Source of the DNA: Takakia lepidozioides | Lineage: Eukaryota; Plantae; Bryophyta | DNA: 64,000 bases | NCBI GenBank assembly: GCA_030704615.1 | Contig: CM060732.1 | Span: 70,184,001 to 70,248,000, forward strand | Direction of reading: 5' to 3' | Part shown: one piece after another, positions 29,931 through 61,957 of the stretch | Numbering within the stretch: position 1 is the first letter of the stretch | Layout of the letters: the number at the start of each line of letters is the position of its first letter | Translations under genes and position numbers: made by a program | The notes under the pieces: model-generated | What the model was told of the DNA's origin: nothing | The model's database searches: none | Seen by the model: only the letters and a program-made list of their open reading frames with translations

Positions 29931-30790
29931 AACAATCCATTCTACTATATGAATGATGTGAGCAGCTGTGCGTGGCATATTTGTTGCAAATCGTACCAAT
30001 TGTCGAACTTCTAAACAAAATCATCCAATTCTATGGTCACAATTTTGAAGTATCGATGGGATCTTTTCATAGCACTATATGTATCTCGTTCATGGTGTTC
30101 CACAACAATGACAAAAAAACATGCATTGTGCACACCACCTCTTGGCACAAACATCGAGTCTATCTTAGACTCTGAATCAGATGAAGATGGAGGAGGTAAA
30201 GATGGTCTACGTCACCCCGTGCCTTATAAACCTTGTGATAGTTATACTTTTTGTAAAAACAACACTTTGGAAAGTAAAATAAAGTTTGTTTAACATCCAG
30301 TGAATTTACAGAGCCTACTGCTCAACATACAAACATTATGATAACTTTATGGTGAAACCTCTCAACCAAATCAATTGTCAAACCAATCTCTAACTTTTTT
30401 TTTCACACTGTAACCGAATAGAGAACCTATTGGGGCTTATGGCTTATAATGCTAGGTATCGAACCTACACCTACATCCACTACAAACATTCTAGTTATGG
30501 TCTGTTAGTTATCATCCATCCTCATCACCATCAACATGCTCTAGAATTGGCCAATGATCATATCCGAACCCACCTATGATAAAAACAAGCGGCAACACAA
30601 AATTGACGTAAGCCCTATTCTTATAGCTTTATGGGGCAGGTTATAGAGCAGAATTGGGGGTATTATTAGGGCGTCAAACGTGAGCCCCCCCCGGGCAGGA
30701 GCTTACACGTAAGAACCCTGCAACGTGGGGAAAAATGTGTAACGCTCATCTAGCCGTTGGATCTATGGCTTTCCATCGGGCTTTACGCAG

Positions 30791-35326: not shown

Positions 35327-38300
35327 ATGGGGACGTTTACACTGCATGCAGTGGAGGGAGACCCCCGCACACTTGCCCCCTTCATCACTGCGGAGGCCTG
35401 CGGGCTTGCTCTGGGCTTCTCCCCCACGGAGAACCTTCCCGTGCTGTCTTTGGATCCATTGACAGGCCGGAGTCCGTTTCTGTTTGTTGGATCCACGGGC
35501 GTTTCTCTCCAGGAGCCACTTGCGGTGTGTCGATTCATTGCCAGCACCAGCCAAATCTCTTCTCTGTACGCCCAGAGTGGGTCTCCTCTGCATTTGCAGA
35601 CGGAGGAGTGGCTAGATTGGGCAGAGAGGGAGGTGCGCAGCACGGTGACGCAAGTTTTGAATGGGAACGGTCAAAACGATAGGGTTCTCAACGTTTTTGA
35701 GAAGATTGCACACGCACTCAGGGGGAAGTTGTATATATTGGAAGATCATCTGACAATTGTGGATATTGTGGTGTGGTCTGAACTGTTCCCGTTGTTTGGA
35801 GGCAACATCAGTGACATCTTTGGGGTGAATGAGGCAGTGTTGAAATGGTTCAGGTAAATTTTGGTCTCTTTCCCTTGTGTCGGTGCTCTTTTATGTGTCA
35901 CAGCTTGGCACTTGCTGTTGACAAACTTTTTCTCTCTCTAAGCGTTTGTTTGTCTGAGAGTCTAATCATCAGTTCTTACAGGACACTGGGTAATTCGGAG
36001 CCTTTTCTCAAAGGGGGAGACACAGCCCTCGGTGACGCCTCATCAGAAACCCTAATTGAGGCAGCTAAAGCAGTGGGAACGGGCAGCGTCAGCTCTGCCG
36101 AGAGTAGTGGTTTAAGATCACTGTTGGTGGGCAGAGTCCCCGTCCCTGGGAAGCGGAATGTGCTGGTGACGAGTGCACTCCCCTATGTCAACAATGTGCC
36201 CCATTTGGGCAACATCATTGGATGTGAGTCGCTGTGTTCTTAAACCCTACATCCTAAAGCCCTTATTGCCCTTTGCAAATTTATCTTGCCATTGTAGAGT
36301 GTAAACCCTGTCTATTTTTTCTTCCCACACTCCCTCTCAAGGCAAGCATATGGGTAGCATATGGCCTACCTACCCTCGGCACTAGACTGAAATTTAAACT
36401 GAGGGCAAGGAGCCTACCTTTGAACAATAAACATATGCCGAGACGAAAAGGAGATTGTAATTGCCCGATGTGCAGGCAACCTGAAGACAGTATCCATTTT
36501 CTGATACATTGTCCGGAGTATTCTCACCAGAGAGTGTCCCTGTTCAGGAACATCAATAACATGGTTCCTGCACCTCTGATGCTTGTGTGAAGGGCTTTCT
36601 AGAGTGTAACTGGAAAGTCGGAACTAATTGTTTATACCAAGGTATTCATACTACTGCAGTGAGCCCCTCACAAAGGTAGTCCTATTCCCTATGTTTCTGT
36701 CCCAACTGGGTGTGGGGTTTTTGGTGTGGCAAACAAAGTCTTGTGAGTACATATGGGTACCAATTCATGCAGCAAGTCCTCCTGGCCTCTTGGTTCTCTG
36801 AGGTGGATATTACATCTAGTCAAAAGTTAACACAGATTCTAGTGTGAAAATCTAGTATAAGTAGATTTGACATTGTGCAAAGGTGATTGTCAAGCAGACA
36901 AACTGTGAGAGCTACAGTCTCACCAAGCTTTCAGTAGCAAGGGACTTGATCAGTCATGGGAAATTCTTGGTTGTTTTGGAAAACCAGAGGAACATTCTCT
37001 AGTGATTAAACTGACATTGGGGTGTTGTGATGGTATAGATGCCTTAAACCTGTACTTGGTCAATTGAGAGTGGGTAGGTGTGTTGAGTGCGGATGTGTAT
37101 GCACGCTACTGTCGGATACGGGGCTACAATATCATCTACATGTGTGGAACTGACGAGTATGGGACGGCCACAGAAACCAAGGCCATGGAGGAGGGGTTGA
37201 CTCCTCAGCAGATTTGTGACAAGTTTGTCATCTGAAGAACCCCCTGTACTTCAATTTCTAGTTCTGCATTTTGATAACACTTTTGATCTGGGATGTTGAA
37301 AGAACACAGGCTACTTTGGATTGTTTGTGAAGTCAAATCCTCCTACTGATTGTACATGATACTACCAGGTATCATGCAATTCACAAGGATATCTATGAGT
37401 GGTTCGACATTCAGTTTGACACATTTGGACGCACATCAACGCCTCAGCAGACAGAGATTTGTCAGGCCATCTTCAAGCAGCTGTATGACAGAAAGCGCCT
37501 CAAAGAAAATACGATGAGCCAGGTGAGCTTTTTCCAGCATGCGACTTAGCTACAGCTAGGAAAGAAGTTACTGAGTGTTTGCAGCAGGACCTGCTGTTGT
37601 GTAGGCAATTTTGACCTGGGGATGAGGTTGAGGGCATAGCCATGAGAGTTGGTTGTGGAAGTTCTCAAAGTGGTTCTTCTTCCTTTTGGGGAATGTAGGA
37701 GATGGAAATGCAGGGTTTAAGCATGGTGTTGCAAGAATTAGCTGCATAGTCTGTGCATAAGAGCAGGATGATGAACATGCAAGGATCATTGTGTTGCACC
37801 ATTCACCACTTTGTATCTTCGGTGGATCAGACTCTGGACATTGGTTGCTTGTGGAGTTTACTTTGAGTTTTGGAGGCATGGTAATCTAATCCGTTGATAT
37901 ATTCCATATGTGCTGCAGCCTTACTGCGACACATGTCAGCGATTTCTAGCAGACAGGTTCGTGGAGGGCACGTGTCCAATGCCAGGGTGTGGTTATGAGG
38001 ATGCACGTGGTGACCAGTGCGATAAGTGTGGGAAGCTGCTCAATGCTGAAGATCTTATTAACCCTCGATGCAAGGTTTCCCCCTACCACTGGCAGAGCAC
38101 AAAACAGCTCTAAATCCCACAAGCTGCAAGCTTCATGTGACTATTGAATTCATATACTGCTTTTAATGAGTCTTCATGCCTACAATTCTGCTTGTGCAGA
38201 TGTCTAGTTTGTTTATTGAGTTGCCGGTCAAGAGGGCATCTGTTGCATAGTTTGGCCTCAATGGCCTCCATCGAGCTTGGGAGAAGCCCCAACCAAACCT

Positions 38301-41300
38301 TATCCTTGTCTCAAGACACATCTTGATACACCATAGCATGATTATTGTAGGTTTGTGGGAACCGTCCAGTAACTCGAGAAACAGAACACTTGTTCTTGGA
38401 CTTGCCCGAACTGAAGAACCAGCTGGAGGGATATGTAGCCAGTACATCCGTGGCAGGGGGCTGGAGTGCAAACTCAGTGCAAACAACCAATGCTTGGATC
38501 CGGGATGGGCTGAAGGAGCGTTGCATCACACGTGATCTGAAGTGGGGAGTGCCTGTTCCTTTGGAAAAATACAAAGAAAAGGTGCTGTTCATTGTTATCA
38601 TGGCAATGGACTTCTGATGTTGAAGGCAAATTGCAGGATCAGAGGCCTAACACCTTGTGCATGCTAAGGAGAAAAAAATGTACAATGGTTTGGTTTTAAC
38701 TCGTTATCTTTGTATGAACAGAGGTCCAATGCTTCCTTTCTCTCACTTGTCAGGTGGCAATGAGTGCTGATCGTGTACAACACAAGCTTCTATGCACCTT
38801 CAATGCAAGGTGTACAATTCAATGTAGTTAGGGGTTGTATTTGCCAAAGGAAGAGCTGACATGACTGGACCGGTGGAGTGTCCAGGTTTTTTATGTGTGG
38901 TTTGATGCACCAATTGGATATATATCTATCACGGCAAATTATACGCCAGAGTGGGAGAAGTGGTGGAAGTCTCCCAAGGATGTGGAGCTTGTGCAGTTTA
39001 TGGGGAAAGATAATGTTCCGTTCCACACTGTAAGAAGAGCTTCTGCTCAAGTGATGTGTACATAGCTGGAAGCGTCAGATAGGAAGTGTTTGTTAGAGTC
39101 ACAGATTATGTTGGGTGCAGGGTCTAATTTTTGAACCTTCAGGGTAAGAATCTGTTTAAATTTTGCTCATGTGATGGTGGCTTGTCTACATGGCCTGTTT
39201 TGGACTCTTAGGGATTGCAGTATCTGGATGTGCTTGATAGCCATAATGGCAATTAAGTGTGGCACCACTGTGGGCTTATGTTTTATGGGAGTTGCTGATT
39301 TTATCTGGGAGCAAGCTCTAGCCACCACTGGCCAAGAGGGTAAAACTGCTGTGTGAAATGGTCAAGAAGGATAGTTTTCCAGTCACAGTTCCAATACTCC
39401 TTTGGGTAGCCACAGATTTGATGCTTGTCTCCATCTTTTCATGCATGTGGGCAAGCCTGGTATTAGTAGGGTGTGTGTGAGGCTCTAAGGACTCATCTAT
39501 TTGTTCTGCACTGGGGTTTGCAGGTTATTTTTCCGTGCACACTGTTGGGCACGGGTGAGCCCTGGACCTTGATGAGGACAATCAGTGTCACTGAATACCT
39601 GAATTATGAGTCAGGTCTGTCCTCACTACTTCACATCTTGCAATGTAAAAAAGTTCTTCATATTGTAGCTTGGGGATTGATAGGCATGTGCTTTTCACCT
39701 GTCAAGCAGAGCTGACCCAGATACAGGTGGATGTGTAGTCTCACGGGTTGACAAATTTTATTTTGCATTTGTAACCTGGGTCTCAGGGGCTTGCAGGCAA
39801 GTTTTCAAAGAGCAGAGGTGTTGGGGTGTTTGGTAATGATGTGAAGACAACAAGCATTCCTGTGGAAGTGTGGCGTTATTATCTCCTTACCAATCGTCCA
39901 GAGGTACCGCCATCTTAGAGTACTGTATAAGTGTCTGTTTGTTAAAATTGGACAATGGGCCATGTATATTGTATGAGGGGAGAGAGTTAAAGTGATTGAG
40001 AAAAAGCATACCTGCTCACTTGGCTGAAACAGAAAGCATGGGTGCGGGCTGTAGGTGTCAGACACCCTGTTCACTTGGGCAGATTTACAGGCAAAACAGA
40101 ACAATGAGTTGTTGAAAAACCTGGGGAACTTCATTCATCGGACCCTCTCTTTTCTTGCTAAGCCAACAGGTTTCTTCCTCACAATTTGTGCTTTTTTCAT
40201 ACTCGTCATGTTGCTGTATTTTGGCTAGTACTTCTCTGCGATGGCTTTTTGAAAGGTTGTGTTTGTACAACAGATCCTCGCGGAAATGTCTAGTGAAGAT
40301 GCTGCTTGCCTGTTTGGGCATCCCATGAAATCTGTGGTTTTGCCTCTGCTTGTTGTCACTAAGGTAATCTTCACATGGTACAAGCTTTAAAGGCAGGATA
40401 GTCTCTTTAGAACATCTCTCTGCACTTTGGGGTTGACATTCCTCAGATACCAACACTTATGAGTGTCATTTATGTGGAAAATTCAGGGGAAGGAGGCTAC
40501 AGCGGTGTGGTTCCAGAAGACAATGGTGCTGAGGCGCATGAGCTGACAGCAGCCTTCGGCAAAAAAGTTGGCGAAACTGTCATAGAGTACATTGAAGCAA
40601 TGGAGAAGGTAATTCTCTCCTCAGGAATAGTGTTGGTTTGTATGGATTTACTGAAGACTTTGACATTTCAATTCTCTTCAAATCAGAAAGTGAAATTGAA
40701 ATATCTGCATTTGTGGCCATTCATTGGGGGTAAGTGTGTGTGTTGCCTGTAGCAGAGAGCATGGTCAGTAATTACCTTCAGTGTCTATTATTGCTGGGAT
40801 CTTTACAGTGTGATTAAATGCCACGTCCTGGTTAACAGGTGAAGCTGAAGGCGGGCCTCAGAACAGCGATGAATATCTCCAGCCTCGGCAATAGCTACCT
40901 CCAAGTATGACTCGCTTGTAGCCAATATCTTGGGTGTATTATTAAGTCTTTGGTGAGAGAGAGTACATAATATTTCTCTTCTTTTATGTAGGTTCATTGC
41001 TTCAGTCAGGGTACTTTGGTTTAAGACACAATGGGGGAAGGAGAGGGAAAGGATGATTGAGGGAGAAAGTAAAAAATATGAGCATGCTATGCTTTTGCAC
41101 GACCTGTAGTCTAATCTATGGCTATGGTGGACACAGGATAGTAAGTTTTGGAAGCTGTACAAGGAGGACCCACCCGCATGTGCAATTGTGTTGAAGACAT
41201 CAGTGGGCCTCGTGCATTTGTTGGCCGTCCTTCTGGAGCCATTCATGCCTTCCTTGTCGCACAAGGTTTGTGATAATTTCCCAAGAGGTGCAATCTCTTT

Positions 41301-43555
41301 GGGCCATTCCCTCTCCTCTTCCATATACATCTCCTCTACCATGGGTTTCCACAATCGGACTCGTGAATTGCTGAACCTGCATGGACTTGCTGCACCTCAT
41401 TCCACAGTTGGAAGGAGTCAAATTTGATAGAATTATCTGCTCATTTTCCTTCATTGTGACTTTGTAAGGCCACAGCAACACCGTTATGAGCAGTGACCAT
41501 ACAAGTCAGAAAGTGCTGGGGTAAATACCAAGCTGTTTTGCAGGGTAACCCAATAAGAGCCATAATCCTGAAATTCAGCTGTAGTTTGAAAGCGGGTTCA
41601 TATTGGATATAATTGCAGGTATTGGCACAGCTGAATTTGCCCCCGTCAACATTAACGCTTGTAGAGGAAAAAGGAGATTTGATGAGAGCTTCCAGGCCTT
41701 GGGAGCTGGTTCCTGCAGGCCACCAAATTGGCACGCCCGAGACATTATTCTCAGAAATGGTCAGTTGTCACACTTGCCCTGCTGTTTACCAAACTTTGGT
41801 ACAGTCAGCGTTAACAGTATGCTAGAGAGCTGGTAGTCTACTCCAGGGGATCCAGTAGGAAGCTGGCTAAACCTTTGTGGGATCACATGGAAAACTTTCG
41901 CGGCATTCATTGACCTTTTCTTTTGATCAGTAAACTGTGCTGGAAAGTGGAAAGTTTGGCCGGAGGTAGAATTCAGCGCGCAGCTGTAGTGGCTAGGTTT
42001 GGGAGAAGGTAGTTGGCACCCTGTGATAATGCAAGTTACTTGTTACGACTGAGAGCATGATGAGGAAATTGAGAATCTCAAATTAATCGTCTTCAAACAG
42101 GTATTGTAAGTCAATTGGGGTACTTAGTAGGGCACCCTTGAACAGATTATTACCTCTTCACAAAGATGAAGTAAGCTGAATAAGTCTGAAATGTTATTCC
42201 TGATGGTATGCCTATTTTTGAATGAGGGTTTTGCGTATAGGTGACGTTTAGTACCAGAAACTGCTTTTCCCCAGACTGATGACTTGAGTTGTTACACAGA
42301 AAGACGAGGAGGTAGAAAGATACCGTCAGAAATTTGCAGGCAGCCAGGCAGACCGGGCAGCAGCAGAAGCAGGTGTAATTGCAGCGGCTGTGACTGCAAA
42401 TTCAGGTCTGGATCATTAACAGTTGTGAACAGGAGAATGTGGTACTTTATTTAGAGTGAGATACGCTGATGACTGTAGTACTGGAATTGTATAGTAGGCA
42501 TTATGCCCCATTGAAAGTGATGCCATCTTCAATTTGAATAATGTGCCTTCTTTATCTCCAGGTCCCTCAACACCAGCAGTCACTGAGAAAGAGGCCAAGG
42601 GCAAGAAGGGTGGGAAAGGTGTGCCAAAAGATGCAGAAACTAATAAGGGAAAGAAGGCTCCAGCTGCAGTCATAGAGGCTCCAGTTGATGTTGCGAGATT
42701 GGATATACGGGTGGGGCTGATTACTGAAGTGAAGAAGCACCCAGATGCTGATTCTTTGTATGTTGAGCAAATTGATGTGGGAGAGGCTGTGCCCCGTACT
42801 GTGGTCAGCGGTCTTGTTAAGTTCATTCCAATGGAAAAGCTGCAGGTATATATTGCTGTCAGTTCTTTCTTCTCTCTTTCTTTCTTGCAGTCTACATCAC
42901 CCTTTCTCAATAACCCTTGTGCTTTGTTTCTACAGAACCAGAAAGTGTGTGTACTTTGCAACCTAAAACCGGCAGCCATGCGGGGAATCAAATCACATGC
43001 CATGGTTCTGGCTGCGTCCAATGGTGACCATACACAGGTTATATACGGCACTCATCTTTGTCTTCTCTTTGTGCGAGGCAACTGTGTTTCCCAATTGCAG
43101 TGGGTTATGGGTCCTAATCCTTTTTGCATTGGCTTTATGATGGAATTGGAATCAAAGCATCAAATCTTTCAGCACAGATCTCTCACCCTGCCCCACATCC
43201 CTTGTTCCCCCTGTTTTCTTGATTCACCAGTGCTAGTCTCTCGCTATGAGAAAGCACACTCCCTCTCCCTCGTCTACATGGTTGTCAGCTTTTTGTCTTG
43301 TTCTGTGAGTTTTTGTGTATGCAGGTGGAGCTAGTCATCCCTCCAGATAGTGCGGCTGTTGGAGAGAGGGTGAAGTTTCCAGGTTTTGATGGGGAGCCAG
43401 ATGAGGTGCTCAATCCCAAGAAGAAAGTGTGGGAATTGGTGCAACCCCATTTGCATACCAACAATAATCGTGTGGCTGTTTACCAAGATGTGCCTTTCAC
43501 GACAACGGGGGGCATCTGCCAGGTTGCTTCAATTTGCAACGGAGAAATAAAATAG
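35327..43555 (+). CDS. MARS: Cytosolic methionyl-tRNA synthetase with N-terminal GST-like and C-terminal EMAPII-like tRNA-binding domains (18 exons)
   Basis: Exons 35327-35853, 35982-36223, 37078-37222, 37369-37522, 37919-38074, 38351-38581, 38886-39029, 39524-39614, 39797-39903, 40055-40169, 40487-40608, 40839-40904, 41137-41265, 41619-41759, 42300-42405, 42562-42845, 42936-43037, 43325-43555. Motifs: [18 protein letters not shown] (HIGH), Zn knuckles, [28 protein letters not shown]...KHPDADSLY. Confidence 0.95.
36370..36590 (+). mobile_element. LINE 3'-end fragment (C-terminal CCHC zinc knuckle) inside MetRS intron 2
   Basis: [15 protein letters not shown]...[24 protein letters not shown] matches the CxxC...E...H....C motif at the end of non-LTR ORF2 proteins. 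Confidence 0.75.
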
Positions 43556-44421
43556 GCTCTACAGCCTTCCTACATTTTTTCGCAAATTTGGGGGTATGGG
43601 GTAGAGAAAGCTGGCCCCTTTAGATGATAGCCACATTTATATAGCTATTTCCTTCCACATTTTACTGGGTTGGGATGAGAAACTATTGACTTTGACCCAT
43701 GGCAGCCCATGCTGTTTAAACAGGTAGGGTTGAATCGGCTTTGTTGGCAGATGAACAACAGACGATCTCGATGATTGCTGTCTGCAGTACCTGACCAAGT
43801 TTTAAATTTAACTTCTGATAAGATAGAAGTGTAGAGCCTTCTTACTCGCCAATGATGAATAGGCTGCGCGGCCACAGATTGATTGCCAGATTGGATAAGC
43901 AAACGACTTGGTTAGCTTAACCTCATTGGTATTGATTCTGTACTCTTTCCATCTACATTCTTAATTCTTCTCTTATGGGACCCTCAGGAGTTGCATAGTT
44001 GTCAGTAGACTCAAATTATTACCCCTAAATGTGATCTCTTTGAAGATCTCATTTCCATTTGGATTCATCAGTCTCCCCATGCCCTTGTTTCTTGGTTGGA
44101 GTTGTCAAATGATTTCGGGTGTGTGAATCTGTGTTGGCCAGAAATGAGTCTCGTGGATGCAAGAAGAAGTAGATAGTAATTCATGAAGCGGATGGGGGCT
44201 GGCTCACTGTCCAACTTACACTACTTTTTGCCAATCATACTTTCATGGCATTCCTGCTTCACCCCGTTCCTAAATAGCATATTCCACAGATTCTAGGAAT
44301 ATAGAGAAAATATGTTTCAGCAAAACAAAAATGTGCTCCTGCAGAAAAATTACAAAACTATCTCAGATTTGTGCAAAATATGTTCTGGCAAAACAATTCT
44401 TTTGTTTTTATTAAGGGAAAT

Positions 44422-44664
44422 ACCTGGGAGCGACAGCTCGCAAATCAGGCCCCTTAATTATAGTGAGAGGAGAAACCAAAAATGTTGCTCAGGCTAAGAA
44501 AGAAACCCCAAACTATTTCAAATTTGTGAAGAGCTAGTAATACTAGCGCACTTATTTCCTTTTAGAAGATATCCATCTAGAAAAAAATAAAATTGGAAAT
44601 GAAATTTCGCCAGTGAAATATTTTTATGATTTTGAAATAAAAACGTGGGCTGTCGCTCCCAGGT
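44422..44664. mobile_element. AT-rich MITE-like element
   Basis: Perfect 16-bp inverted repeat ACCTGGGAGCGACAGC (44422-44437) / GCTGTCGCTCCCAGGT (44649-44664) bounding an AT-rich interior. Not present in the duplicated copy of this region. Confidence 0.6.
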
Positions 44665-45868
44665 TTCATTTAAAAAAATAAAAAATAAAATTAAAATTAA
44701 ACAATTCCGCGAAGGAAACCCTCCATAATATAATCAAATATAACATATGAATATGACGCCTCCCCAAGGGAGCCTGAACTTATGGTGTGCTACACTCTAC
44801 TGCCTCCCAGCACGATGCATTTTGGGCGTAATCTCGGTAGAAGACATCATCTAGAATATTGGATGGCATATTCAGGATGACATCTGGATACTCTTGTGAA
44901 TAAACCCAGCAAAATAGTCCAACTTACTAAACTGAAAGTAAATCTATATTCTCTAGAGAACAAACACGATCTCTAGTGACCACCGACGCTCCTTCTCTCC
45001 CACCGAGGCTTCTCTCCCACCGAGGCTGCTGTGACGATCTCTCCCACCGAGGATCCTTCTCTCTGCTGTGATGATCTCTACCACCGAGGCTCCTTCCCTC
45101 CTCCTTCCTTCCTTCACATCACAGTGTATATATATGCCACTCCTCCCTCCCTCTCCCACATCTTCACTTGGCGCTCGCATGTTCCATCCCTCTCGTCTCC
45201 TCTCTCTCTCCAGCTAGCTTGTGTAGAGTTTTATTTGGCGTCCAAGTGCACTAGCAAAAGAATTTGGTGCTTTGGAGGCTCTAAGGACCGAAGGATTGCG
45301 ACCTCCCAATTCGCTTGGACCGCTTGCAAATCTCAGTAAGTGCCGGCGTATTCTGCCCCAGGTTTCTCTTTATTCTCTTTCTGGCACATTGGTAGCTGCT
45401 GTCTGATCGAATTCCTCAGCTGTTCCACACTGGTTACCGTTTGTAACCACTGTCAACATCGGGGATACTTTTTGGTTTAATGTTTTCTTCGGGGAATCAC
45501 GATAAAGTGTTCTCTACAATATTGCACCATTATTGGGCTTAATGTTCACTACTGCTTAGGTAGCCAGGAATGTGCTTATTTGTAGTAATCATGCTTCGGA
45601 GATGGCCTACAATTCACATGGCCTAATGAGACACTCCTTCTCTATAGAACATGGGAATTCAGTTTCTTCTTCCGATGACTTGTGAACATTTTGACATTTA
45701 TGCAATTATCCTTTGCCCAGTCTGTCCAAAGCTCTTTATCCTAAGACACCACAAATGCAGGGCTTGCACTTGCTGTCGTAGTTCCAACAGATGGTACTGC
45801 TAGAAATAATCACTGGATATCGTGGTGGTGAGTACTTGCAGGAGGAGGACAGGAGGAGGACGCGAAAA

Positions 45869-46360
45869 ATGATGGGAACCTTAAGTGTGGGCGTGGTACT
45901 GGTGGGGGTGGGTCTGGTGCTACTAGCCATGGTCAACCATGTGCACGGGGCTGTTCCTTACAGCAACAGCGTGACCATTACTATCACGAACAAGATCGCA
46001 GACGGGTTCATGCGGCCCATGCGTATGGTTCCTGGCCCGCCTAACCCATCGACCATCTCAGTTGACTGCATTTCTGATCGCTTGCGTCAAACTCCCCTTG
46101 GGACGCAATGGCTCTATAACGAATATGTATATTCGTGGACCTTTCAGCCGATAGACCTCCATCACGTGGCATCGTGGACCTGTAGCTTCACGTACATGGA
46201 CCAGAAGACTGAATTTGTGATCTGGAATGGGGCGGTGAGCAATCTTCGCGCACTATCCTGCGAACAGTGCTTTTGGGAGGTCCATGAAGGAGGATTCTGG
46301 TGGACCCAGGGCTCCATCACAAATGCCCCATATGAATTCTACAGAGGCTGGGATGCTTGA
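45869..46360 (+). CDS. Secreted S-protein homologue (SPH, plant self-incompatibility S1 family), copy 1
   Basis: Hydrophobic signal peptide, then VTITITN...ISVDCISD...LGTQWL...YSWTF...WTCSF...FVIW...CEQCFWEVHEGGFW...W. This matches the SPH pattern (V-I-N, CxS, LG, W-F, C-F, CxxC-W, terminal W). TATA-like motif at ~45126 and probable 5'UTR intron ~45336-45841. Confidence 0.85.
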   Translation: MMGTLSVGVVLVGVGLVLLAMVNHVHGAVPYSNSVTITITNKIADGFMRPMRMVPGPPNPSTISVDCISDRLRQTPLGTQWLYNEYVYSWTFQPIDLHHVASWTCSFTYMDQKTEFVIWNGAVSNLRALSCEQCFWEVHEGGFWWTQGSITNAPYEFYRGWDA

Positions 46361-47125
46361 TCAGCCCTCACTCCTCTTCCCCGCTTAACACCAGGTTTTT
46401 CCATCACTGCTGATTGTTGACGAGGGTTCAACATTATCATGCAAGCTAACTCTGATTTCGAATTTTGAATTTTGCATGATGTCCTGAATCAGATCATGGC
46501 GTTCAGGAGCTTGGGGCCAATATGGATCTCAAACAGATGTGGATAATTAGTCTGGATAGATTGGTAGCTGCAACTAGAAACATGTCCCTCCATAGTGATA
46601 GCCAGATTCCATTACATATGTGAACATGTATATATCGCTATGTGCACAGAAGTGGTGCTAGAATCTGATGAGATTGTGATAAGGTACTTCAGCTACCTTG
46701 CAGTTCGCTGGTAATAAAGTTTATATATTCTGGCAGTCCCAATTGTCTCTGAAGTCATGTATAGTCTGTACATATATAACATCCAACGTTGTTGAGATAG
46801 AGTCTTATGGTACTAGTGCTTGAAACTGAGCCTGCAGTGAGGTTATTCAGCAATGATAGTGCACAAGGCATGAACCCAGCTTGCATGCCATATCCACGCA
46901 CATACATTAATATATCTTAGTAAGTTGGTATATAGATCAATTGTCTCTCTGTACACATCCAACGTTGTTTGAGATAGAGTCTAGTGCTTGTAATACTGAA
47001 CTGAAGCTCCAGTATGAGCAGTACCCAGCTACAAACACTAGCCAACAACATAAACCGATCATATAATGTCAACTAAAACTTGTTAAATAGTTTGATCTGT
47101 CCCAACCTTCTCGTCCTATGCGGAC

Positions 47126-50672: not shown

Positions 50673-51246
50673 CGTCCGCACAGGACGAGAAGGTTGGAAC
50701 AGATCAAACTATTTAACAAGTTTTAGTTGACATTATATGATCGGTTTATGTTGTTGGCTAGTGTTTGTAGCTGGGTACTGCTCATACTGGAGCTTCAGTT
50801 CAGTATTACAAGCACTAGACTCTATCTCAAACAACGTTGGATGTGTATCTATACATGACTTCCGAGACAATTGGGAATGCCAGAATATATGAACTTTATT
50901 ACCAGCGCACTGCAAGATAGCTGAAGTATTATATCACAATGTGATCAGATTCTAGCACCACTTCTGTACACATAGCGATATGTAAAGGAATCTGACTATC
51001 ACTATGGAGAGAAATGTTTCTAGTTTCTACCAGTCTATCCAGACTAGTTATTGACATCTCCATATTTCAGTTCGCCCCAAGCTCCTGACCTGCTCCTGAA
51101 CGCCATGGTCTGATTGAGGACATCATGCAAAATTCAAAATTATCAGAGTTGATTTGCATGATAATGTTGAACCCTCGTCAACAATCAGCCATAAGCAGAG
51201 TGATGAAAAAACCTGGTGTTAAGCGGGGAAGAGGAGTAAGGGCTGA

Positions 51247-51723
51247 TCAAGCATCCCAGCCTCTGTAGAATTCATATGGGGCGTTTGTGATGGCGCCCTG
51301 GGTCCACCAGAATCCTCCTTCATGGACCTCCCAAAAGCACTGTTCGCAGGATAGTGCGCGAAGATTGCTCACCGCCCCATTCCAGATCATGAATTGAGCC
51401 TTCTGATCCATGTAGGTGAAGCTACAGGTCCACGATGCCACGTGATGGAGGTCTATCGGCTGAAAGGTCCACGAATATACATATCCGTTATAGAGCCATT
51501 GCGTCCCAAGGGGAGTTTCATGCAAGCGATCAGAAATGCAGTAAACTGAGATGGTCGATCGGTTAGGCGGGCCAGGAACCATACGCATGGGCCGCATGAA
51601 CCCGTCTGCGATCTTGTTCACGATAACAATGGTCACGCTGTTGCTGTAAGGAACACCACCGTGCACATGGTTGACCATGGCTAGTAGCACCAGTACCACG
51701 CCCACACTTGAGGTTCCCTTCAT
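51247..51723 (-). CDS. Secreted S-protein homologue (SPH), copy 2, inverted
   Basis: Intact 158-aa ORF. Versus copy 1 it has ~12 amino-acid changes in the mature part and a shorter signal peptide, with all four Cys retained. The promoter/5'UTR is also duplicated (to ~52584). Confidence 0.85.
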   Translation of the reverse strand: MKGTSSVGVVLVLLAMVNHVHGGVPYSNSVTIVIVNKIADGFMRPMRMVPGPPNRSTISVYCISDRLHETPLGTQWLYNGYVYSWTFQPIDLHHVASWTCSFTYMDQKAQFMIWNGAVSNLRALSCEQCFWEVHEGGFWWTQGAITNAPYEFYRGWDA

Positions 51724-52883
51724 CTCTCTCTCCCGTCCCCCTCCTGCAATTACTCACCACCTGGACCTCCAATGATTATTTGTAGCAGTGACATCTCCTA
51801 AGCATGATTCACTATACACAGCTTAACACATTCCTGGCTACCTAATCTAACGCCCAATAATGTGTTACATGATTCCCCCAAGACTCTAAGCCGGAAAGTA
51901 TCCCTGTTGGTAACAATGGTTTCAACTGGTTACAATCAGTAACCAGTGTGGAACTGCAGCTGAATTCGATCAGACAGCTACCAATGTACATCTACACAGA
52001 TCTAGGTTGAATTGCGCAAGTTGCTTACAAAATCTTGGAGTGGATTCCTAGGCCAAAGAGAATGAAAAGAAAAGAGATAGAGAGAGAATGGAGGGAAACC
52101 TGGGCAGAATACGCCGGAACTTACTTAGATTTTCAATCGGTCTCATGAGGCTGCAGTCGTTCGGTCCTTAGAGCCTTCAAATGCGCCAAAACTCTACTGC
52201 TGGTGCCGCTCAATACTTACGCCCCGCAAGTAAAACACTGTACACAAGCTAGGAGAGAGAGGAGACGAGACGGATGGCTCATGCGCGCGCCAAGTGAAGA
52301 TGTGGGAGAGGGAGGGAGGAGTGGCATATATACACTGTGCTGTGAAGGATGGAAGGAGCCTCGGTGCTAGAGATCGTCTCAGCAGCCTCGGTGCGAGAGA
52401 GAAGGAGAGTGTTCTCTAGAAAATATATATTTAGTTTGCTGTAATGTTGAATATGATCAGTTTAGTAAGTTGGACTATTCTGCTGGGTTTATTCACAAGA
52501 GTATCCAGATGTCATCCTGAATATGCCATCCAATATTCTAGATGATGTCTTCTACCGAGATTACGCCCAAAATAGCATCGTGCTAGTCTGGTCTATATAA
52601 TGGTGGATGTATTTTCTTTCCAGACACCAGTATGAGAATGAGTATCATGCCACAATACCAGCTGGTATGAGATCAATTCTGGTATCTTTGCAAAGCCATC
52701 TTGAATTACAAGATCAAGTGAAGAAGTGATCAAGTGAAACCAAATACAAGAAATATAAAGAAGTAAATATACATAAATACAAGTATGTAGGCATATGTAT
52801 ACATAATTAATATAATACACATACAAGAGTAAATGAGGAAGACGGCGGGGGAGTACTGGTATTGAGGCTGCAATGAAAAAACT

Positions 52884-55800
52884 GAGATCACATTTAGGGC
52901 TGATAATTTTGGGTCTATTGACCATCTGATGGTCCCAAAAGAGACGAACTAAGAACGTAGATGGAAAGAGGGATTTGAGAGTACAGAATCAATACCAATG
53001 AGGTTAAGCTAACCAAGTCGTTTGCTTATCCAATCTGGCAATCAATCTGTGGCCACGCAGCCTATTCATCATTGGCGAGTAAGAAGGCTCTACACTTCTA
53101 TCTTATCAGAAGTTAAATTTAAAACTTGGTCAGGTACTGCAGACAGCAATCCTTGAGATCCGTCTGTTGTTCATCTGCCAACAGAGCCGATTCAACCCTA
53201 CCTGTTTAAACAGCATGGGCTGCAATGGGTCGAAGTCAATAGTTTCTCATCCCAACCCAGGTATGTGGAAGGAAATAGCTATATAAATGTGGCTATCATC
53301 TAAAGGGGCCAGCTTTCTCTACCATATACCCCAAGATTTGCGAAAAAATGTAGGAAGGCTATAGAGCCTATTTTATTTCTCCGTTGCAAATTGAAGCAAC
53401 CTGGCAGATGCCCCCCCATGTCGTGAAAGGCACATCTTGGTATACAGCCACACGATTATTGTTGGTATGCAAATGGGGTTGCACCAATTCCCACACTTTC
53501 TTCTTGGGATTGAGCACCTCATTTGGCTCCCCATCAAAACCTGGAAACTTCACCCTCTATCCAACAGCCGCACTATCTGGAGGGATGACTAGCTCCACCT
53601 GCATACACAAAAACCCACAGAACAAGACAAAATGCTGACAACCAGAGTCCAAGTGTGCTTTCTCATAGAGCAAGAGACTAGCACTGGTGAATCAAGAAAA
53701 CAGGGGGAACAAGGGACGTGAGGCAGGGTGAGAGATCTGTGCTGAAAGCTTTGATGCTTTGATTCAAATTCCATCAGAAAGCCAATGAAAAAAGGATTAG
53801 GACCATAACCCACTGTAATTAGGAAACACTGTTGCCTCGCACAAAGTGAAGATAAAGATGAGTGCGGTATATAACCTGCGTATGGTCACCATTGGACGCA
53901 GCCAGAACCATGGCATGTGATTTGATTCCCCGCATGGCTGCCGGTTTTAGGTTGCAAAGTACGCACACTTTCTGGTTCTGTAGCAGCAAAGCACGAGGGT
54001 TATTGAGAAAGGGTGAAGTAGACTGCAAGAAAGAAAGAGAGAAGAAAGAACTGACAGCAATATTTACCTGCAGCTTTTCCATTGGAATGAACTTAACAAG
54101 ACCGCTGACCACAGTACGGGGCACAGCCTCTCCCACATCAATTTGCTCAACATACAAAGAATCAGCATCTGGGTGCTTCTTCACTTCAGTAATCAGCCCC
54201 ACCCGTATATCCAATCTCGCAAAATCAACTGGAGCCTCTATGACTGCAGCTGGAGCCTTCTTTCCCTTGTTAGTTTCTGCATCTTTTGGCACACTTTTCC
54301 CACCCTTCTTGCCCTTGGCCTCTTTCTCAGTGACTGCTGGTGTTGAGGGACCTGGAGATGAAGAAGGCAGATTATTCAAATTGAAGATGGCATCATTTTT
54401 AAGGGGGCATAATGCCTAATATACAATTCCGTATTACAGCCGGTCTGCCTGGCTGCCTGCAAATTTCTGACGGTATCTTTCTACCTCCTCGTCTTTCTGT
54501 GTAACAACTCAAGTCATCAGTCTAGGGAAAAGCAGTTTCTGGTACTAAACATCAACTATACGCAAAACCCTCGTTCGAAAATACCATCAGGATTAACATT
54601 TCAGACTTATTCAGCTAACTTCATCGTTGTGAAGAGGTAATAATCTGTTCAAGGGTGCCAACCACCTTCTTCCAAACCTAGCCACTACAGCTGCGCGCTG
54701 AATTCCACCTCCGGCCAAACTTTCCACTTTCCATCACAGTTTACTGATCAAAAGAAAAGGTCAATGTATGCCGCAAAAGTTTTCCATGTGATCCCACAAA
54801 ATAGCCAGCTTCTTACTGGATCCCCTAGAGTGGACTACCAGCTCTTTAGCATACTGTTAATGCTGAATGTACCAAAGTTTGGTAAACAGCAGGGCAAGTG
54901 TGACAACCGACCATTTCTGAGAATAATGTCTCGGGCGTGCCAATTTGGTGGCCTGCTGGAACCAGCTCCCAAGGCCTGGTAGCTCTCATCAATTCTTCTT
55001 TTTCCTCTCTACAAGCATTGATGTTGACGGGGGCAAATTCAGCTGTGCAAATACCTGCAATAATATCCAGTATGAACCCGCTTTCAAACTACAGCTGAAT
55101 TTCAGGATTATGGCTCTTATTGGGTTACCCTGCAAAACAGCCTGGTATTTACCCCAGCACTTTCTGACTTGTATGGTCACTGCTCATAACGGTGTTGCTG
55201 TGGCCTTACAAAGTCACAATGAAGGAAAATGAGCAGATAATTCTATCAAATTTAAGTTCTTCCAACTGTGGAATGAGGTGCAGCAAGTCCATGCAACGAA
55301 TGGCCCCAACGGGAATGCACCTCTTGGGAGATTATGACGAACCGTGTGTGACAAGGAAGGCATGAATGGCTCCAGAAGGACGGTCAACAAATGCACAAGG
55401 CCCACTGATGTATTCAACACAGTTGTGCATGCGTGTGGGTCCACCTTGTACAGCTTCCAAAACTTACTATCCTGTGTCCGCCATAGCCATAGATTAGACT
55501 ACAGGTCGTGCAAAAGCATTGCATGCTCATATTTCTCCCTCATTCAGTTTGTTGATCCACCACAATTATCCTTTCCCTCTCCTTCCCTCTTTGTGTCTTA
55601 AAGCAAAGTACCCTGACTGAAGCAATGAACCTACATAAGAGAAGAGAAATATTACGTACTCTCTCTCAACGAAGACTTAATAATACACCCAAGATATTGG
55701 CTACAACCGAGTCATACTTGGAGGTAGCTATTGCCGAGGCTGGAGATATTCATTGCTGTTCTGAGGCCCGCCTTCAGCTTCAGGAGGTGGCATTTAATCA

Positions 55801-56981
55801 CACTGTAGAGATCCCAGTAAATAATAGATACTGAAGGTTATTACTGACCATGCTCTCTGCTACAGGCAACATACACACTTACCCACAAATGCAAATATTT
55901 CAATTTCAGTTTCTCATTTGAAGTAAATTGAAATGTCAAAGTCTTCAGTAAATCCATACAAACCAACACTATTCCTGGAGAGGAGAGAATTACCTTTTCC
56001 ATTGCTTCAATGTACTCTATGACAGTTTCGCCAACTTTTTGCCGAAGGCTGCTGTCAGCTCATGCGCCTCAGCACCATTGTCTTCTAGAACCACCCGCTG
56101 TAGCCTCCTTCCCCTGAATTTTCCACATAAATAATACTCACAAGTGTTGGTATCTGAGGAATGTCACCCAAAGTGCAGAGAGATGTTCTAAAGAGATTTC
56201 CGCGAGGGTCTGTGGTACAAACACAACCTTTCAAAAAGCCATCGCAGAGAAGTACTTGCCATAGTACAACAACGTGACGTGGATGAACAAAGCACGAATT
56301 GTGAGGAAGAAACCTGTTGGATTAGCAAGAAAAGAGAGGGTCCGATGAATGAAGTTCCCCAGGTTGTTCAACAACTCATTGTTCTGTTTTGCCTGTAAAT
56401 CTGCCCAAGTGAACAGGGTGTCTGACACCTACAGCCCGCACCCATGCTTTCTGTTTCAGCCAAGTGAACAGGTATGCTTTTTCTCAATCACTTTGACTCT
56501 CTCCCCTACATGGCCCATTCTCCAATCTCAACAAACAGACCTATATGGCATGAATGTCTTGGTTCCAAGCACCTAACTAACACTTATAGAGTACTCTAAG
56601 ATGGCGGTACCCCTGGACGATTGCTAAGGAGATAATTAAGCCACACTTCCACAGGAGTGCTTGTTGTCTTCACATCAACACCTCTGCTCTTTGAAAACTT
56701 GCCTGCAAGCCCCTGAGACCCAGGTTACAAATGCAAAATAAAATTTGTCAACCATGGAGACTACACATGCACCTGTATCTGGGTCAGCTCCGCTTGACAA
56801 GGTGAAAAGCACATATCTATCAATCCCCAAGCTTCAATATGAAGAATTTTTTTACATGGCAAGATGTGAAGCAGTGAGGTATTCAGTGACACTGATTGTC
56901 CTCATCAAGGTCCAGGGCTCACCCGTGCCCAACGGCGCGCACGGAAAAATAACCTGCAAACCCCAGTGCACAACAAATAGA
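52884..56981 (-). pseudogene. Inverted partial MetRS duplicate (exon 8 to 3' flank)
   Basis: Reverse complement of ~39497-44038. Deletions in exons 8, 9 and 15, frameshifts in exons 11 and 14, and a GAG>TAG stop in the last exon (~53558). Confidence 0.92.
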
Positions 56982-57422
56982 GCTCTGGCCAGAGCGCATC
57001 GTCGAAACCAATGGGGGTCATGGGTTCGATTCCCGGTGGGTGTGCAGGCTACAGGACCACTAGTGGGGGTATTCTCCAGAAGTGGAAGTTCTTGTAGAAT
57101 TTGATGACTTGCTTGTGGCAAGTTAACTGCCCTGCTACCCACCTCGTGACCTTGTCGTCTACTTACCTCTTCGCATGCTCTGCTCGCCTCTTCAAAGGCA
57201 GAACGACACACCCCCACAGGCACAGTTGGGTACTACATTGTTCGCATCATGTTGTGGTTATAAGTACAAGGGGCAATGTGGCAGTTATGAGTTGTTTTTG
57301 CTTCTTCTTCTTGGGTCGTGGAGGACTGAGCTCCAGAGCCCCACGCCTCGTGAGCCTCCTGCAATACTCACACCGGCTGTAGATCCACATGGAAAGTGTG
57401 TGGCACAAGGAGATTGGATGAC

Positions 57423-60400
57423 ATGCCACTTCCTGCACTAGGCGCACCATTGCGACGTCATTGTCGTGAAGGAGTTCTTGACGCCATCCTGCGATGGAAG
57501 CCCCACGTGATGCTCATGTGGGTTCTCTACCTTCCATTGATGTCTTGCTCTGAGTTGTGTTGATTGAAGATGAACTACGAAAAGTGAAAGCATGCAGGTT
57601 GAGAAGCACATCTTTGATGAAGGGAGGTGCAATGTCCGCAGGCGGTGCTGCAGAAGCTGTCGATAGCGGGCTGGCTACGAGCACATGGCAAGTTTGTGAG
57701 GCCTGAGTTAACCAAGAAACAGCGGCAGGAACTGAAGGAGTGTTTTGAACTTATTGACGCCGATGGTTCTGGTAACATTCTTTGTCGACAACACCCACGT
57801 TCATTTCGTGTATATACTGAATTATATGGAGAGGGACCAGGAGAATTATCAACGATGGCTTCAAATGTGCATATTTCAGATTCAACAGCGGGATTAGATT
57901 GTATCTTTGTTCAGCTGTAAACAACGTTCACTGAAAAGTGCAGGGTCAATTGCATGTGTGGGCTTGCAGGCGCGATAGATGCGTCGGAGATGTTGACAGC
58001 CTTCAATGTACTGGGTATGCATGTGAAGAAGTCCGAGGTTGAAGCAATGCTGGCCGAAGTGGATGCTGACGGTTCTGGCGAGGTAGTAAAATTCCGGGGT
58101 GATGTGTCTATCCCCTTCAAACACTCTTCTGCCCAGAATTTGTCTCCTTTTTAAAATACTGGGCAATGCAGCATGTGGGAGTACAGTAAAAACAGGTTTT
58201 TTCTACAATCTGCATGTTTAGAACTCTGACCCTGGTTGATCTGAAACATAAAGACAAGGTTGGAGCTGTGGTATAGGTCCTCAACACATCAATTTGGGAG
58301 TCTGAATCAGGACACCCATTGTACCACAACTGCTACTTACTCTGTGAAATCCCAGGAGAGAGGGGAAGAGAGATGCTCACTGACCTTTCCTGCCAATGGC
58401 GTTTATGACTTCAGCTTCAGGGTACAGTCCCTGTGGGATGTCACAGAGCAGTTGTGGGGCTTCTATCCAGAAGTTTTTGAAAATTTAGCCCGAAATTGCT
58501 GTAGCACTTGGCGTGGCAGCCAATGACAAGTTAATGTACAGTAAGGGCTGTTGGAGATTTTATTGGTAAAAACGCAATGTTGACACCAGTGCTGGTGCCC
58601 TGCCTTCAATCTCGCACATGTGAGAGGTGTGGCTGTGATGGCACTGCAGTTGATAGATAGAAAGAGAGTTTCTTTCTTGTATCCATGATCTCATGCGAGG
58701 ATCAAATGTTGTGTCCCATACAGGTAGAGTACCCTGAGTTTGTCCAAATAATGACAACGAAGCTGGACAGACAGCAACCAGATGCCTCTCCTTCCAGAGC
58801 TGATGGTATGCTTCAAATCTTCTACCTTTCCTTGTGGGATAGATTGTAGTAATTAAAAGTAAGTAATCTCTTTTCTCTCCTACTACAGTTTTCTTTACTG
58901 ATGCACAGGTTGCACATCTGTTTTTCATGTCTCTATGTGTATTGTGGTTCATGTCTTTGTTCGTATGTCAAGTGATCCTTCAGATTGGAGATTCAAAAGA
59001 GCCTGTGTCCATCAACTCACAGCCTTCGTTCTATTTTACATTCATGAAATAGTATCTTGGAAATGTTCTGCAGGAAAGTCAGGGAAGCAGCAGACTCTGC
59101 CATTTCCCCTTTTGGCCCAAGCATATAGGAGGAAGAAGGTTAGAAACCATTATCTTGCTAGGTCCATGTTTCCTTATTGTCATGCTCTCTTCTGTTTGAA
59201 AATTCCTTATCTCTTACATGAGCTCTCAGTGGTCCCCTTGTGTGTCTCTTATGTACGCCAGCATATATCCGAACCAACTTAGGATTATCAAGGTTTGGTA
59301 ACAGAGAACTCATGAACATATCATGGTCATGTAAGTAAGAGTTATACCATAACCCAACACGAACATATTTTTCCACCTCTGTAAATTGATGATGTTCCCA
59401 TGTCACATTTTAGTTTTGTCACAAGACATGCAAGATATGCGAAGTGTGTGTGCTGGGAGTGTTCCATTTTGCGATTCTTCTCCCATTCTTTCTGGTGCTG
59501 TTGAAATGTAAGTAGCTAATGAGGACATCCACAGAGAGAGTCTATTGAGGGGAAGAACATGGGGGAAGGTTTGGCATACAGCTGATGGAGGCAGTGATGG
59601 GAGGGGACAAGGCAACACAAGAAAGATTGCAGGCACGTGCAGATGCTGCTGAGGCTGAGCGGCGAGCAATGTTGGATGAAGCAGCCAACCAGAAGCAGGT
59701 TGTGCCTTTCTCTGTCATGGTCCCTGTCATTGCACACCGACAGGGTCTGCTGCATCTAAAATTAACCATGCTGATGTGCAGTTTGGTTCAGATAGATTTA
59801 CTCTCTCTCTATGCACAGATCAGAGTATCCTTCAAAGTTTACAGTTGATAGTCCTATGATAAATACATTTTGCCAAGGCTCGTGCAAAGCCAAGTATCTT
59901 ATTTTGGTGTGTAGCTAGACTGTATTGAATGTATGGTAGCTATCTCATAAGTAGCTCTAGGGCTCTGTTAGTAACTAATCTGGCCACAGTCCATACACAA
60001 AGATGTCTGCAGTAGAAGGCCACACAGCCTAGTGAATGGCCATCTTAGAGCAAGATAAGGGCTTTTTGTTGGTTCAAAGGCATGAACACGCATCTCCAGA
60101 GATGAGATTCATGCCTTTCTTATGCCTTTTTGTGTCCATCCAGGCGATCAAGAAAATTCAACAAAAAACTCTCACTAGTGTGGCAAGCCAGGTACAACTA
60201 GTCACACAACTATTTTTCCTGTGTGTGTGTGTATCTCTCTCTTGGTTCTTGGTACCTTGTCCCAGGGTCCTCATGGCCTTCTGTGGACATTATAAATTTC
60301 TCTCCTTTTTTGCTTGAGCTTGCTCATGTGCCCTCACTTTCTTGATTTGACATAGGAGAGTTTAGTCAGCTGTATAGGAAAAATACGCTCATCTTAAAGT

Positions 60401-61957
60401 TCCTTGATTTAGTATATCCACACATACACCTGTTGTGTTCAATAGTGTGAGGGTGGTTGAAATGCAGAGGATCAGACGAGCTGCAAAATTGAAACAAAAT
60501 GAATTCAAGAAGTTACATGTTACTGGTGCCCCTTCACCCAGACAAGTTTAGAGATGTTGCAAGCTAAAAAATGGAAGAATCAAAGATGAAGTGTGGTCAC
60601 ACCAGTGTGGTGCCATGCATGACCTTGTTTGTGCTTTTGGCAAATTAATGTCATGATTAATGTCAGATCTTTGTTGCATATTATAGCTCCGTACATTTCT
60701 CATGTTGAAGCCAGCCAGTTGCAAAAATGAGGACTCCAATATTCTTACACAATTTACCAATAACCTCATGTCTCTTATATGGAGGACCAGAGTGACCAAT
60801 TCTGTCATGACTGAACTTATCCCAAAACTCAAGTACACAGAATCCAAAACTTTGGGACGTCTGAGCTGAGCTTTGTTTTTACAAGAGCATCCAAATTGTC
60901 AAGGAGGTCCTTAGGCAAAACAGGGGGGTATGGAGTAGAATTTGCCGGTCATTGTATCTTGTAGAGGAAATTGAAGCATGGGAGGAGTGGCTGATGTTAT
61001 GCGTGCAGAATCGCCGCTGCCATCATATGTGATAGAACACATGGATTCGGATGTGAAGAAAGTGTTGTACAACATCCATGAGCGTGCTTCTGTACGCCGT
61101 ACATCCATGGCTGGCGAACGAGATAAGGCTACCACCAATTCCAAATCCGACATTGCTCCTATACCTGAGAAGTCGGAGGAGAAGCCCACCACTTCTTCAG
61201 AAGACAAGGTTGATGAAGTATCTGTATCACCAGGTACAAGTCTCTAGGCATTTCCATTGCTGGACACTTGGGCTGTTTCAGACGCTTAGAATTAAAGTTA
61301 CTGCGATATGATGCCTCCACTCTTTGCTGTGGTTTCAGACAGTAACTAAAACTGGCTGTTGTTCCACACGACAGCCAGTTTCACACCCAGCTATTTAATA
61401 GGAAAATGCCTCCCTGTTATTCACCTTGAGCAGTTAAAATTGGGTATATGCAAAACATTTTTCTCACCAAACATTTGCTACTCTTGATATGACTGCAGAG
61501 AACTTGAAAGAAGTTATTAAGACAGTCAAAGCAATGCCAAACTCAGCTTATCCTCCTCCTCGAATTGCGAACACCGCCTACAAGGAGGACTTCAAAAAGC
61601 TTGTCGCGTTTCGTTCAATGGTAACTTTTCTCCCTGTCTCATAACCCACCTCTCTCCCCGTTACCTTCTTATCTCTCCACAACCAACTCGAATGGCAATG
61701 AGCAGGTGCGACACAAGCCAACATTGGAGCAGCAGTTGCTGCATGTGCATGCAATCAAGTCCCTCCACGATTATTTTGAGGAAGGACATTGGGAGATCAA
61801 AGGAAGTCCACTACAGTATGCTGCATCACAGCATGCTACCAGCATTTCAATAACAGCTGCTTCTCTTGAAGATCGCCCCAGCTCCACTAGTTTCGGAAAA
61901 CTGAGGCCTCGTCCAATGTCGAGCTTGGGTGAGCTATGCAGGCCCAGATGGATCTAA
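57423..61957 (+). CDS. Centrin/caltractin-like EF-hand protein with long non-EF C-terminal extension
   Basis: Exons 57423-57506, 57642-57771, 57970-58082, 58724-58805, 59074-59138, 59582-59698, 60144-60191, then less certain exons near 60468, ~61009-61232, ~61499-61620, 61706-61957. EF hands: LTKKQRQELKECFELIDADGSG|AIDASEM and EVDADGSGE|VEYPEF. Start codon and middle exons are uncertain. Confidence 0.75.

Follow-up and report, generated by a model that had tools for sequence, protein, structure and literature searches.

How two open copies of one small gene came to lie among the broken remains of two larger ones is the question raised by a locus of the bryophyte Takakia lepidozioides (GenBank assembly GCA_030704615.1, contig CM060732.1, positions 70,184,001 to 70,248,000 of the forward strand). 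This stretch of 64,000 nucleotides is the window that was analyzed, and all positions below are counted from its first letter. The small gene belongs to the SPH family, and its neighbors are a methionyl-tRNA synthetase (MetRS) gene and a gene with EF-hands. An earlier note on this DNA had proposed a tandem duplication and then an inversion, with only the SPH gene surviving in two intact copies. Our analysis makes it likely that the full history comprised a tandem duplication, gene conversion between the copies, a later inversion, and reciprocal decay of the flanking genes, leaving two SPH genes.

The locus consists of two units, delimited by self-BLAST, global alignment, and reading of the junctions. 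Unit 1 (37238..48878, + strand) is 11,641 bp long and carries MetRS exons 4 to 17, the first SPH gene (SPH1), and the decayed 5' part of the EF-hand gene. Unit 2 (48879..61631, + strand; 12,753 bp) is collinear with unit 1 once an inverted segment (50673..56982, - strand), the reverse complement of unit-1 positions 39496-47127, is flipped back. Self-BLAST gave direct matches of 37238-39275 with 48879-50622 (93-96% identity) and of 47265-48876 with 57069-57844 plus 60696-61628 (94-96%). The inverted matches paired 39496-44038 with 56981-52884 (86-95%) and 44809-47127 with 52584-50672 (80-99%), and every match between the units had an E-value of 1e-47 or lower. In the global alignment, a first block pairs unit-1 positions 37238-39495 with 48879-50672 directly, a middle block pairs 39496-47127 with 56982-50673 in reverse, and a last block pairs 47128-48878 with 56983-57844 plus 60637-61631, again directly. 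The 2,792 bp at 57845-60636 are present in unit 2 and absent from unit 1, and about 170 bp of unit 1 just before the left inversion breakpoint (39274-39442) are missing from unit 2. Some intergenic DNA is no longer alignable: about 770 bp in unit 1 (44039-44808) versus about 300 bp in unit 2 (52585-52883). Neither this nor the missing 170 bp had been pointed out in the earlier note. The earlier note had placed and oriented these blocks correctly to within 1 to 3 bases, and flipping the segment restores the order of MetRS, SPH, and centrin-like gene that it had described.

The tandem junction at 48878/48879 is precise to the base, with an ambiguity of at most 1 nt. Here the sequence of the unit end meets that of the unit-1 start, and the same end at unit 2 runs into unique DNA. 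The joining of a unit end to a unit start, with collinear copies, is the head-to-tail arrangement of a tandem segmental duplication. The duplicated segment begins about 18 bp downstream of the third MetRS coding exon, in the intron that had been proposed, and its end lies 10 bp past the beginning of an EF-hand-gene intron. The earlier note had put this end in the last intron of a centrin-like gene; an intronic end is what was found, and the gene name was loose.

The inversion junctions at 50672/50673 and 56982/56983 were also read at base level. Both are the reciprocal joins expected from breakpoints at 39495/39496 and 47127/47128, minus 1-2 nt each. Because the junctions are reciprocal, have lost only 1-2 nt, and share no homology, the inversion bears the signature of a clean two-break event rejoined by end joining. 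Inversion through recombination between inverted repeats finds no support, as the breakpoints lack inverted homology: within 150 bp on either side of the two breakpoints, the best inverted match was 7 nt, compared with a mean of 8.2 in shuffled sequence.

Each unit retains a different flanking gene. The intact MetRS gene (35327..43555, + strand) ends within unit 1 and was delimited by Pfam searches and by reading of its exons; for this gene and the EF-hand gene alike, each exon was searched separately rather than as part of a joined protein. It encodes a GST-like N terminus followed by catalytic, anticodon-binding, and C-terminal tRNA_bind domains. The exons span positions 1-391 of Pfam tRNA-synt_1g contiguously and then Anticodon_3 and tRNA_bind, and the domain set of a class I MetRS (catalytic, anticodon-binding, and C-terminal tRNA-binding) is complete. 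An HLGN motif in exon 2 and a KFSKS motif in exon 9, read directly, are taken for the HIGH and KMSKS signatures. Coding exons 1-3 lie upstream of the duplication, outside it, and the unit-2 copy lacks them. What that copy retains is split in two by the inversion breakpoint in intron 7, into the remains of exons 4-7 (48879..50672, + strand) and of exons 8-17 (52884..56982, - strand). Exon 4 was mostly removed by a 259-bp deletion, exon 6 has an in-frame 12-bp deletion, exon 7 a 2-bp frameshift, exon 11 two 1-bp deletions, exon 13 an insertion of 2 bp, and exon 17 an in-frame stop; exons 8 and 14 are cut by deletions of 23 bp and 116 bp, respectively. With at least seven disabling lesions, and about 3.8 disabling indels per kb of dead exon, the unit-2 MetRS is demonstrably a dead copy. 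The proposal that it was unit 1 that kept MetRS therefore stands.

The EF-hand gene shows the reverse pattern. In unit 2 it extends over 57423..61620 (+ strand) and runs on beyond 61631, with four open candidate exons (57423-57506, 57642-57771, 57970-58082, and 58724-58805) that have GT-AG borders. The exons between 57642 and 58805 encode two EF-hand loops, which are similar to the N-lobe of centrin. Because the domain is divided between them, these exons give weak Pfam EF-hand matches. No second EF-hand pair was found, and the later candidate exons match no Pfam family. Centrin identity, which entails four EF-hands in about 170 amino acids, was rejected because only two EF-hand loops are seen, and EF-hand-pair gene is the more fitting name, its N-lobe being centrin-like. 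It looks intact where its exons can be tested. The unit-1 pseudocopy (47613..48868, + strand) has a 1-bp deletion after 47794 that shifts the frame within the first EF-hand exon, lacks 132 bp at 47697, and lacks 2,792 bp at 47900, including the second EF-hand exons. The end of the duplication also severs it from its 3' exons, and it is demonstrably dead. Thus, of the claim that unit 1 lost and unit 2 kept a centrin-like gene, the loss holds and the retention agrees with the open unit-2 exons, but the gene is not a canonical centrin.

Between two EF-hand coding pieces of unit 2 lies a stretch of 135 nt (57507-57641) that begins with GT, ends with AG, and sits in phase 0. The unit-1 counterpart (47696-47698) is without 132 of the 135 nt; the frame is kept, and one extra GAG codon remains. 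No terminal repeats or target duplication were found at the stretch, and no further copy of it in the window. Either the pseudogene may have lost an intron almost exactly, or an insertion in the live copy may have created one. At the other end of the unit-1 pseudogene, a GT donor at 48869, belonging to its last retained exon, precedes the acceptor of the MetRS exon-4 remnant (48869-49005). A chimeric EF-hand/MetRS transcript was therefore conceivable just after the duplication; it would have been out of frame, with exon phases of 0 versus 2.

SPH lies wholly inside the duplicated unit, and therefore two open SPH genes are present. SPH1 (45869..46360, + strand) is an intronless open reading frame (ORF) of 163 amino acids with a hydrophobic N-terminal leader and four cysteines; SPH2 (51247..51723, - strand) is an intronless ORF of 158 amino acids. 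They score 32.5 and 34.6 bits, respectively, against Pfam Self-incomp_S1 (PF05938; cut-off, 24 bits) and cover profile positions 10-94 of 104. The two genes are convergent, 4.9 kb apart, rather than head-to-tail because of the inversion. Both proteins have the invariant cysteines C67, C105, C131, and C134 along with the core motifs; in each, a hydrophobic leader of about 22-27 residues, read directly, precedes a mature domain of about 135 residues with four cysteines, as in the family. The cysteine spacing is similar to what we take to be the family pattern. An AlphaFold2 model of SPH1 built from a two-sequence alignment shows a helix at residues 8-26 but, with a confidence score (pLDDT) of 33, is unusable for comparison with the beta-sandwich fold of the solved SPH15.

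SPH1 and SPH2 differ by 14 replacements and a 5-residue indel. The indel, which is in-frame and the only one, is a 15-bp tandem duplication (45887-45919) that adds five residues to the hydrophobic core of the SPH1 leader relative to SPH2. BLAST identity over the SPH region is only about 86%, compared with 91-96% over the coding part in the global alignment, because the local alignment ran through indel-rich flanks. In the proximal upstream regions, a 189-bp indel 74 bp before the ATG sets the two genes apart, as do many repeats and poorly alignable DNA. An exact-sequence look-up of SPH2 returned no record, and a word search with it returned no relatives. Scanning a metagenome collection, from which the plant itself is absent, with the SPH alignment gave 187 pattern matches, none of them a relative, and a PDB sequence search came back blank.

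Whether both SPH copies are working genes is the part of the history that is most exposed to an alternative. The pair has 5 silent and 16 replacement changes, giving a synonymous divergence (dS) of 0.050, a nonsynonymous divergence (dN) of 0.045, and a dN/dS of 0.89, which is indistinguishable from 1 (Fisher p = 0.79). That both copies have been under strong purifying selection is rejected, since an omega of 0.3 or lower gives P(Nd >=16) <3e-4. Simulations were calibrated on the dead MetRS exons and on non-coding DNA from the same unit, taken as neutral; in 8-11% of runs (p ~0.08-0.11), a lone SPH copy under drift kept its open frame. The null in this comparison is one drifting lineage; a null in which both copies are neutral (p = 0.017) was discarded as wrong. 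It is possible, then, that no gene was born and that one SPH copy is a young pseudogene, as yet without a disabling mutation. A ratio like that of neutrality, the rejection of strong constraint on both copies, the survival of the frame in some drifting copies, and the diverged upstream regions are all compatible with this explanation. However, the four cysteines and the core motifs are preserved in both proteins, the sole indel is in-frame and confined to the leader, and the equally old MetRS exons gathered disabling indels at the rate given above. We regard the young pseudogene as unlikely, though it is the alternative that survives best, and infer that both SPH copies are in use. The gene birth that the earlier note saw here is plausible but unproven: both ORFs are open and above the Pfam cut-off, but the substitution ratio and the drift simulations stop short of establishing it.

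A bolder reading, to which we give little credence, is that selection keeps both SPH genes open while their mature domains change near-neutrally. If so, a bryophyte would have a secreted recognition ligand under diversifying selection, reminiscent of PrsS of poppy, and the convergent inverted layout might also give hairpin small RNAs that tune the family.

The order of the duplication and the inversion can be approached through the divergence between the units. Outside putatively converted patches, the units diverge by 4.5-5.9% in non-coding DNA and show 54 indels over 7.5 kb, the longest reaching 2.8 kb. With moss-like substitution rates, this would make the duplication, as a rough estimate, a few million years old. 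Two tracts are markedly more similar. Tract 1 (37754..39030, + strand, paired with 49129-50378) has a non-coding divergence of 1.9%, versus 4.3-6.1% in its own flanks (Fisher p = 0.0015). This 1.3-kb tract takes in MetRS exons 5-7 and their introns, and it is probably the product of gene conversion between the live MetRS and its pseudogene. Conversion at this site could in principle pass lesions of the pseudogene into an essential gene. Tract 2 (46951..47561, + strand) diverges by 1.6%, versus 9.5% to its left and 5.4% to its right (p = 9e-5 against the rest of its alignment block). In unit-1 coordinates it spans the right inversion breakpoint, with equal divergence on both sides, and each half is significant alone. 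In unit 2, 6.3 kb separate its halves (50673-50849, inverted, and 56983-57366), which point in opposite directions. Tract 2 is most simply read as a single gene-conversion patch made while the copies were still collinear. Because the tract is continuous across the breakpoint, conversion would have preceded the inversion, and a two-step history is favored.

A one-step rearrangement, in which replication-based template switching (of the microhomology-mediated break-induced replication [MMBIR] or fork stalling and template switching [FoSTeS] type) made the duplication and its inverted middle together, has to be set against this sequence of events. Three junctions in one locus, blunt or with 0-1 nt of microhomology, would suit such a mechanism, and the similar divergence of the inverted (5.9%) and non-inverted (4.5%) parts means that sequence clocks cannot separate the events. 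However, the inversion junctions are reciprocal to 1-2 nt with nothing gained or templated, so that three template switches would have had to land on matching bases, which is less parsimonious, and the tract of 1.6% divergence across the right breakpoint is easiest to account for if the copies were collinear when they were homogenized. We therefore consider a one-step origin improbable. The proposal that tandem duplication came before inversion is supported by the reciprocal breakpoints and tract 2.

An assembly artefact, with two haplotypes or collapsed repeats joined in tandem, is hardly credible even for a structure known from a single assembly, given that non-coding DNA differs by 4-6% between the copies and has indels of up to 2.8 kb, that one copy holds a base-precise internal inversion, and, most tellingly, that gene decay is complementary, whereas allelic haplotypes would not each miss a different essential part.

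The history that we favor would begin with the ancestral order of MetRS, SPH, and EF-hand gene. An 11.6-kb segment would have been duplicated head-to-tail through a blunt, non-homologous join; its left end lies near the start of the intron that follows MetRS coding exon 3, and its right end near the start of a late EF-hand-gene intron. Patches of the two copies would later have been homogenized by gene conversion. Two double-strand breaks in the second copy, one in MetRS intron 7 and one within a tRNA-like element, 0.77 kb downstream of SPH, would then have been rejoined in reverse, flipping 6.3 kb. Only one complete MetRS was possible, in unit 1 with the promoter and exons 1-3, and only one complete EF-hand gene, in unit 2 with the 3' exons; the partial copies therefore decayed, presumably by accumulating small indels and larger deletions, along with a nonsense change. 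Meanwhile, the SPH proteins would have diverged near-neutrally and their proximal upstream regions would have been reshaped. The order of the events and the gene conversion are deduced from the patterns of divergence described above.

Several points weigh against this history. The SPH dN/dS of 0.89 is compatible with drift of one copy, whose open frame would survive by chance in the simulated 8-11%. The structure rests on one assembly, and its single-copy ancestor is one that we infer. Local constraint or variation in mutation rate, rather than conversion, could account for the low-divergence tracts. Finally, the unit-2 EF-hand gene has only about 440 bp of native upstream DNA, and it requires splicing of the 135-nt candidate intron (57507-57641).

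The tRNA-like element at the right inversion breakpoint occupies 47120..47215 (+ strand), with its second copy at 56983-57068 plus 50673-50680, the latter inverted. Read directly, it has a D-arm-like GCTC...GAGC and a perfect box-B-like GGTTCGATTCC, and the breakpoint cuts it between the acceptor-like start and the D-arm. Neither ARAGORN nor Rfam called a tRNA in this stretch; it is possibly the head of a short interspersed nuclear element (SINE).

Other features flank the duplicated region. An intronless N-myristoyltransferase gene of 440 amino acids (32847-34169, - strand) matches best in Sphagnum (82%) and in two liverworts, Calypogeia and Marchantia (79-80%), and an exact-sequence look-up of it returned no record. 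The Sphagnum relatives are also single ORFs and are arranged as a tandem pair. The loci in Calypogeia and Sphagnum have no MetRS, SPH, or EF-hand neighbors; the single-copy ancestral state, for which a synteny comparison had been suggested, was thus not observed at either. Just downstream of the duplication, and convergent on the EF-hand gene, lies a long exon of a phospholipase D gene (62433-63959, - strand) with PLDc and PLDc_2 domains. Farther upstream, a 148-bp inverted repeat (26879-27023 and 30332-30479, 77% identity) surrounds 3.3 kb of low-GC DNA (38-42%) without a convincing ORF, possibly an old transposon.

The locus is a clean but ordinary worked example of how a family of small secreted proteins grows. 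Duplication, inversion, conversion patches, and the reciprocal death of neighbors are all readable from one sequence, and the dead MetRS exons provide a local neutral yardstick of the same age as the SPH pair. No new mechanism or gene family is involved; the value lies in a dated, annotated case for the evolution of SPH genes in bryophytes, among which we know of no member with a known function.

The locus can be compared with several known systems. Inverted-duplication loci can yield hairpin RNA, as in the proto-microRNA model. Like such loci, this one has arms of about 2.3 kb (44809-47127 and 52584-50672) that face each other across a 3.5-kb spacer with a whole gene inside each; here, however, the arms are 80-99% identical with many indels. 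As an inversion, the rearrangement resembles simple two-break end-joining events in its reciprocal junctions, its loss of 1-2 nt, and its lack of shared breakpoint homology. Unlike a typical one, it is confined to one copy of a fresh duplicate, and as a result, only a redundant pseudogene and a tRNA-like element were broken. As a tandem segmental duplication with partial flanking genes, the locus follows the familiar course in which truncated copies become pseudogenes and the enclosed gene is doubled: the breakpoints lie inside the two flanking genes, so a unit can hold just one of them complete. What goes beyond a plain duplication of this kind is the later inversion, together with the conversion patches; the principle is the same. 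In the SPH/PrsS family (PF05938), small intronless genes, leader-bearing proteins with four cysteines, and local duplication recur, and all are found here. Growth of the family through local duplication is already known in mosses. Niphotrichum japonicum is reported to have 56 copies of Self-incomp_S1 and a species-specific expansion (PMC10619864). Unlike in other moss SPH expansions, at this locus one can read, base by base, which unit was duplicated, where it was joined, and what became of the neighboring genes.

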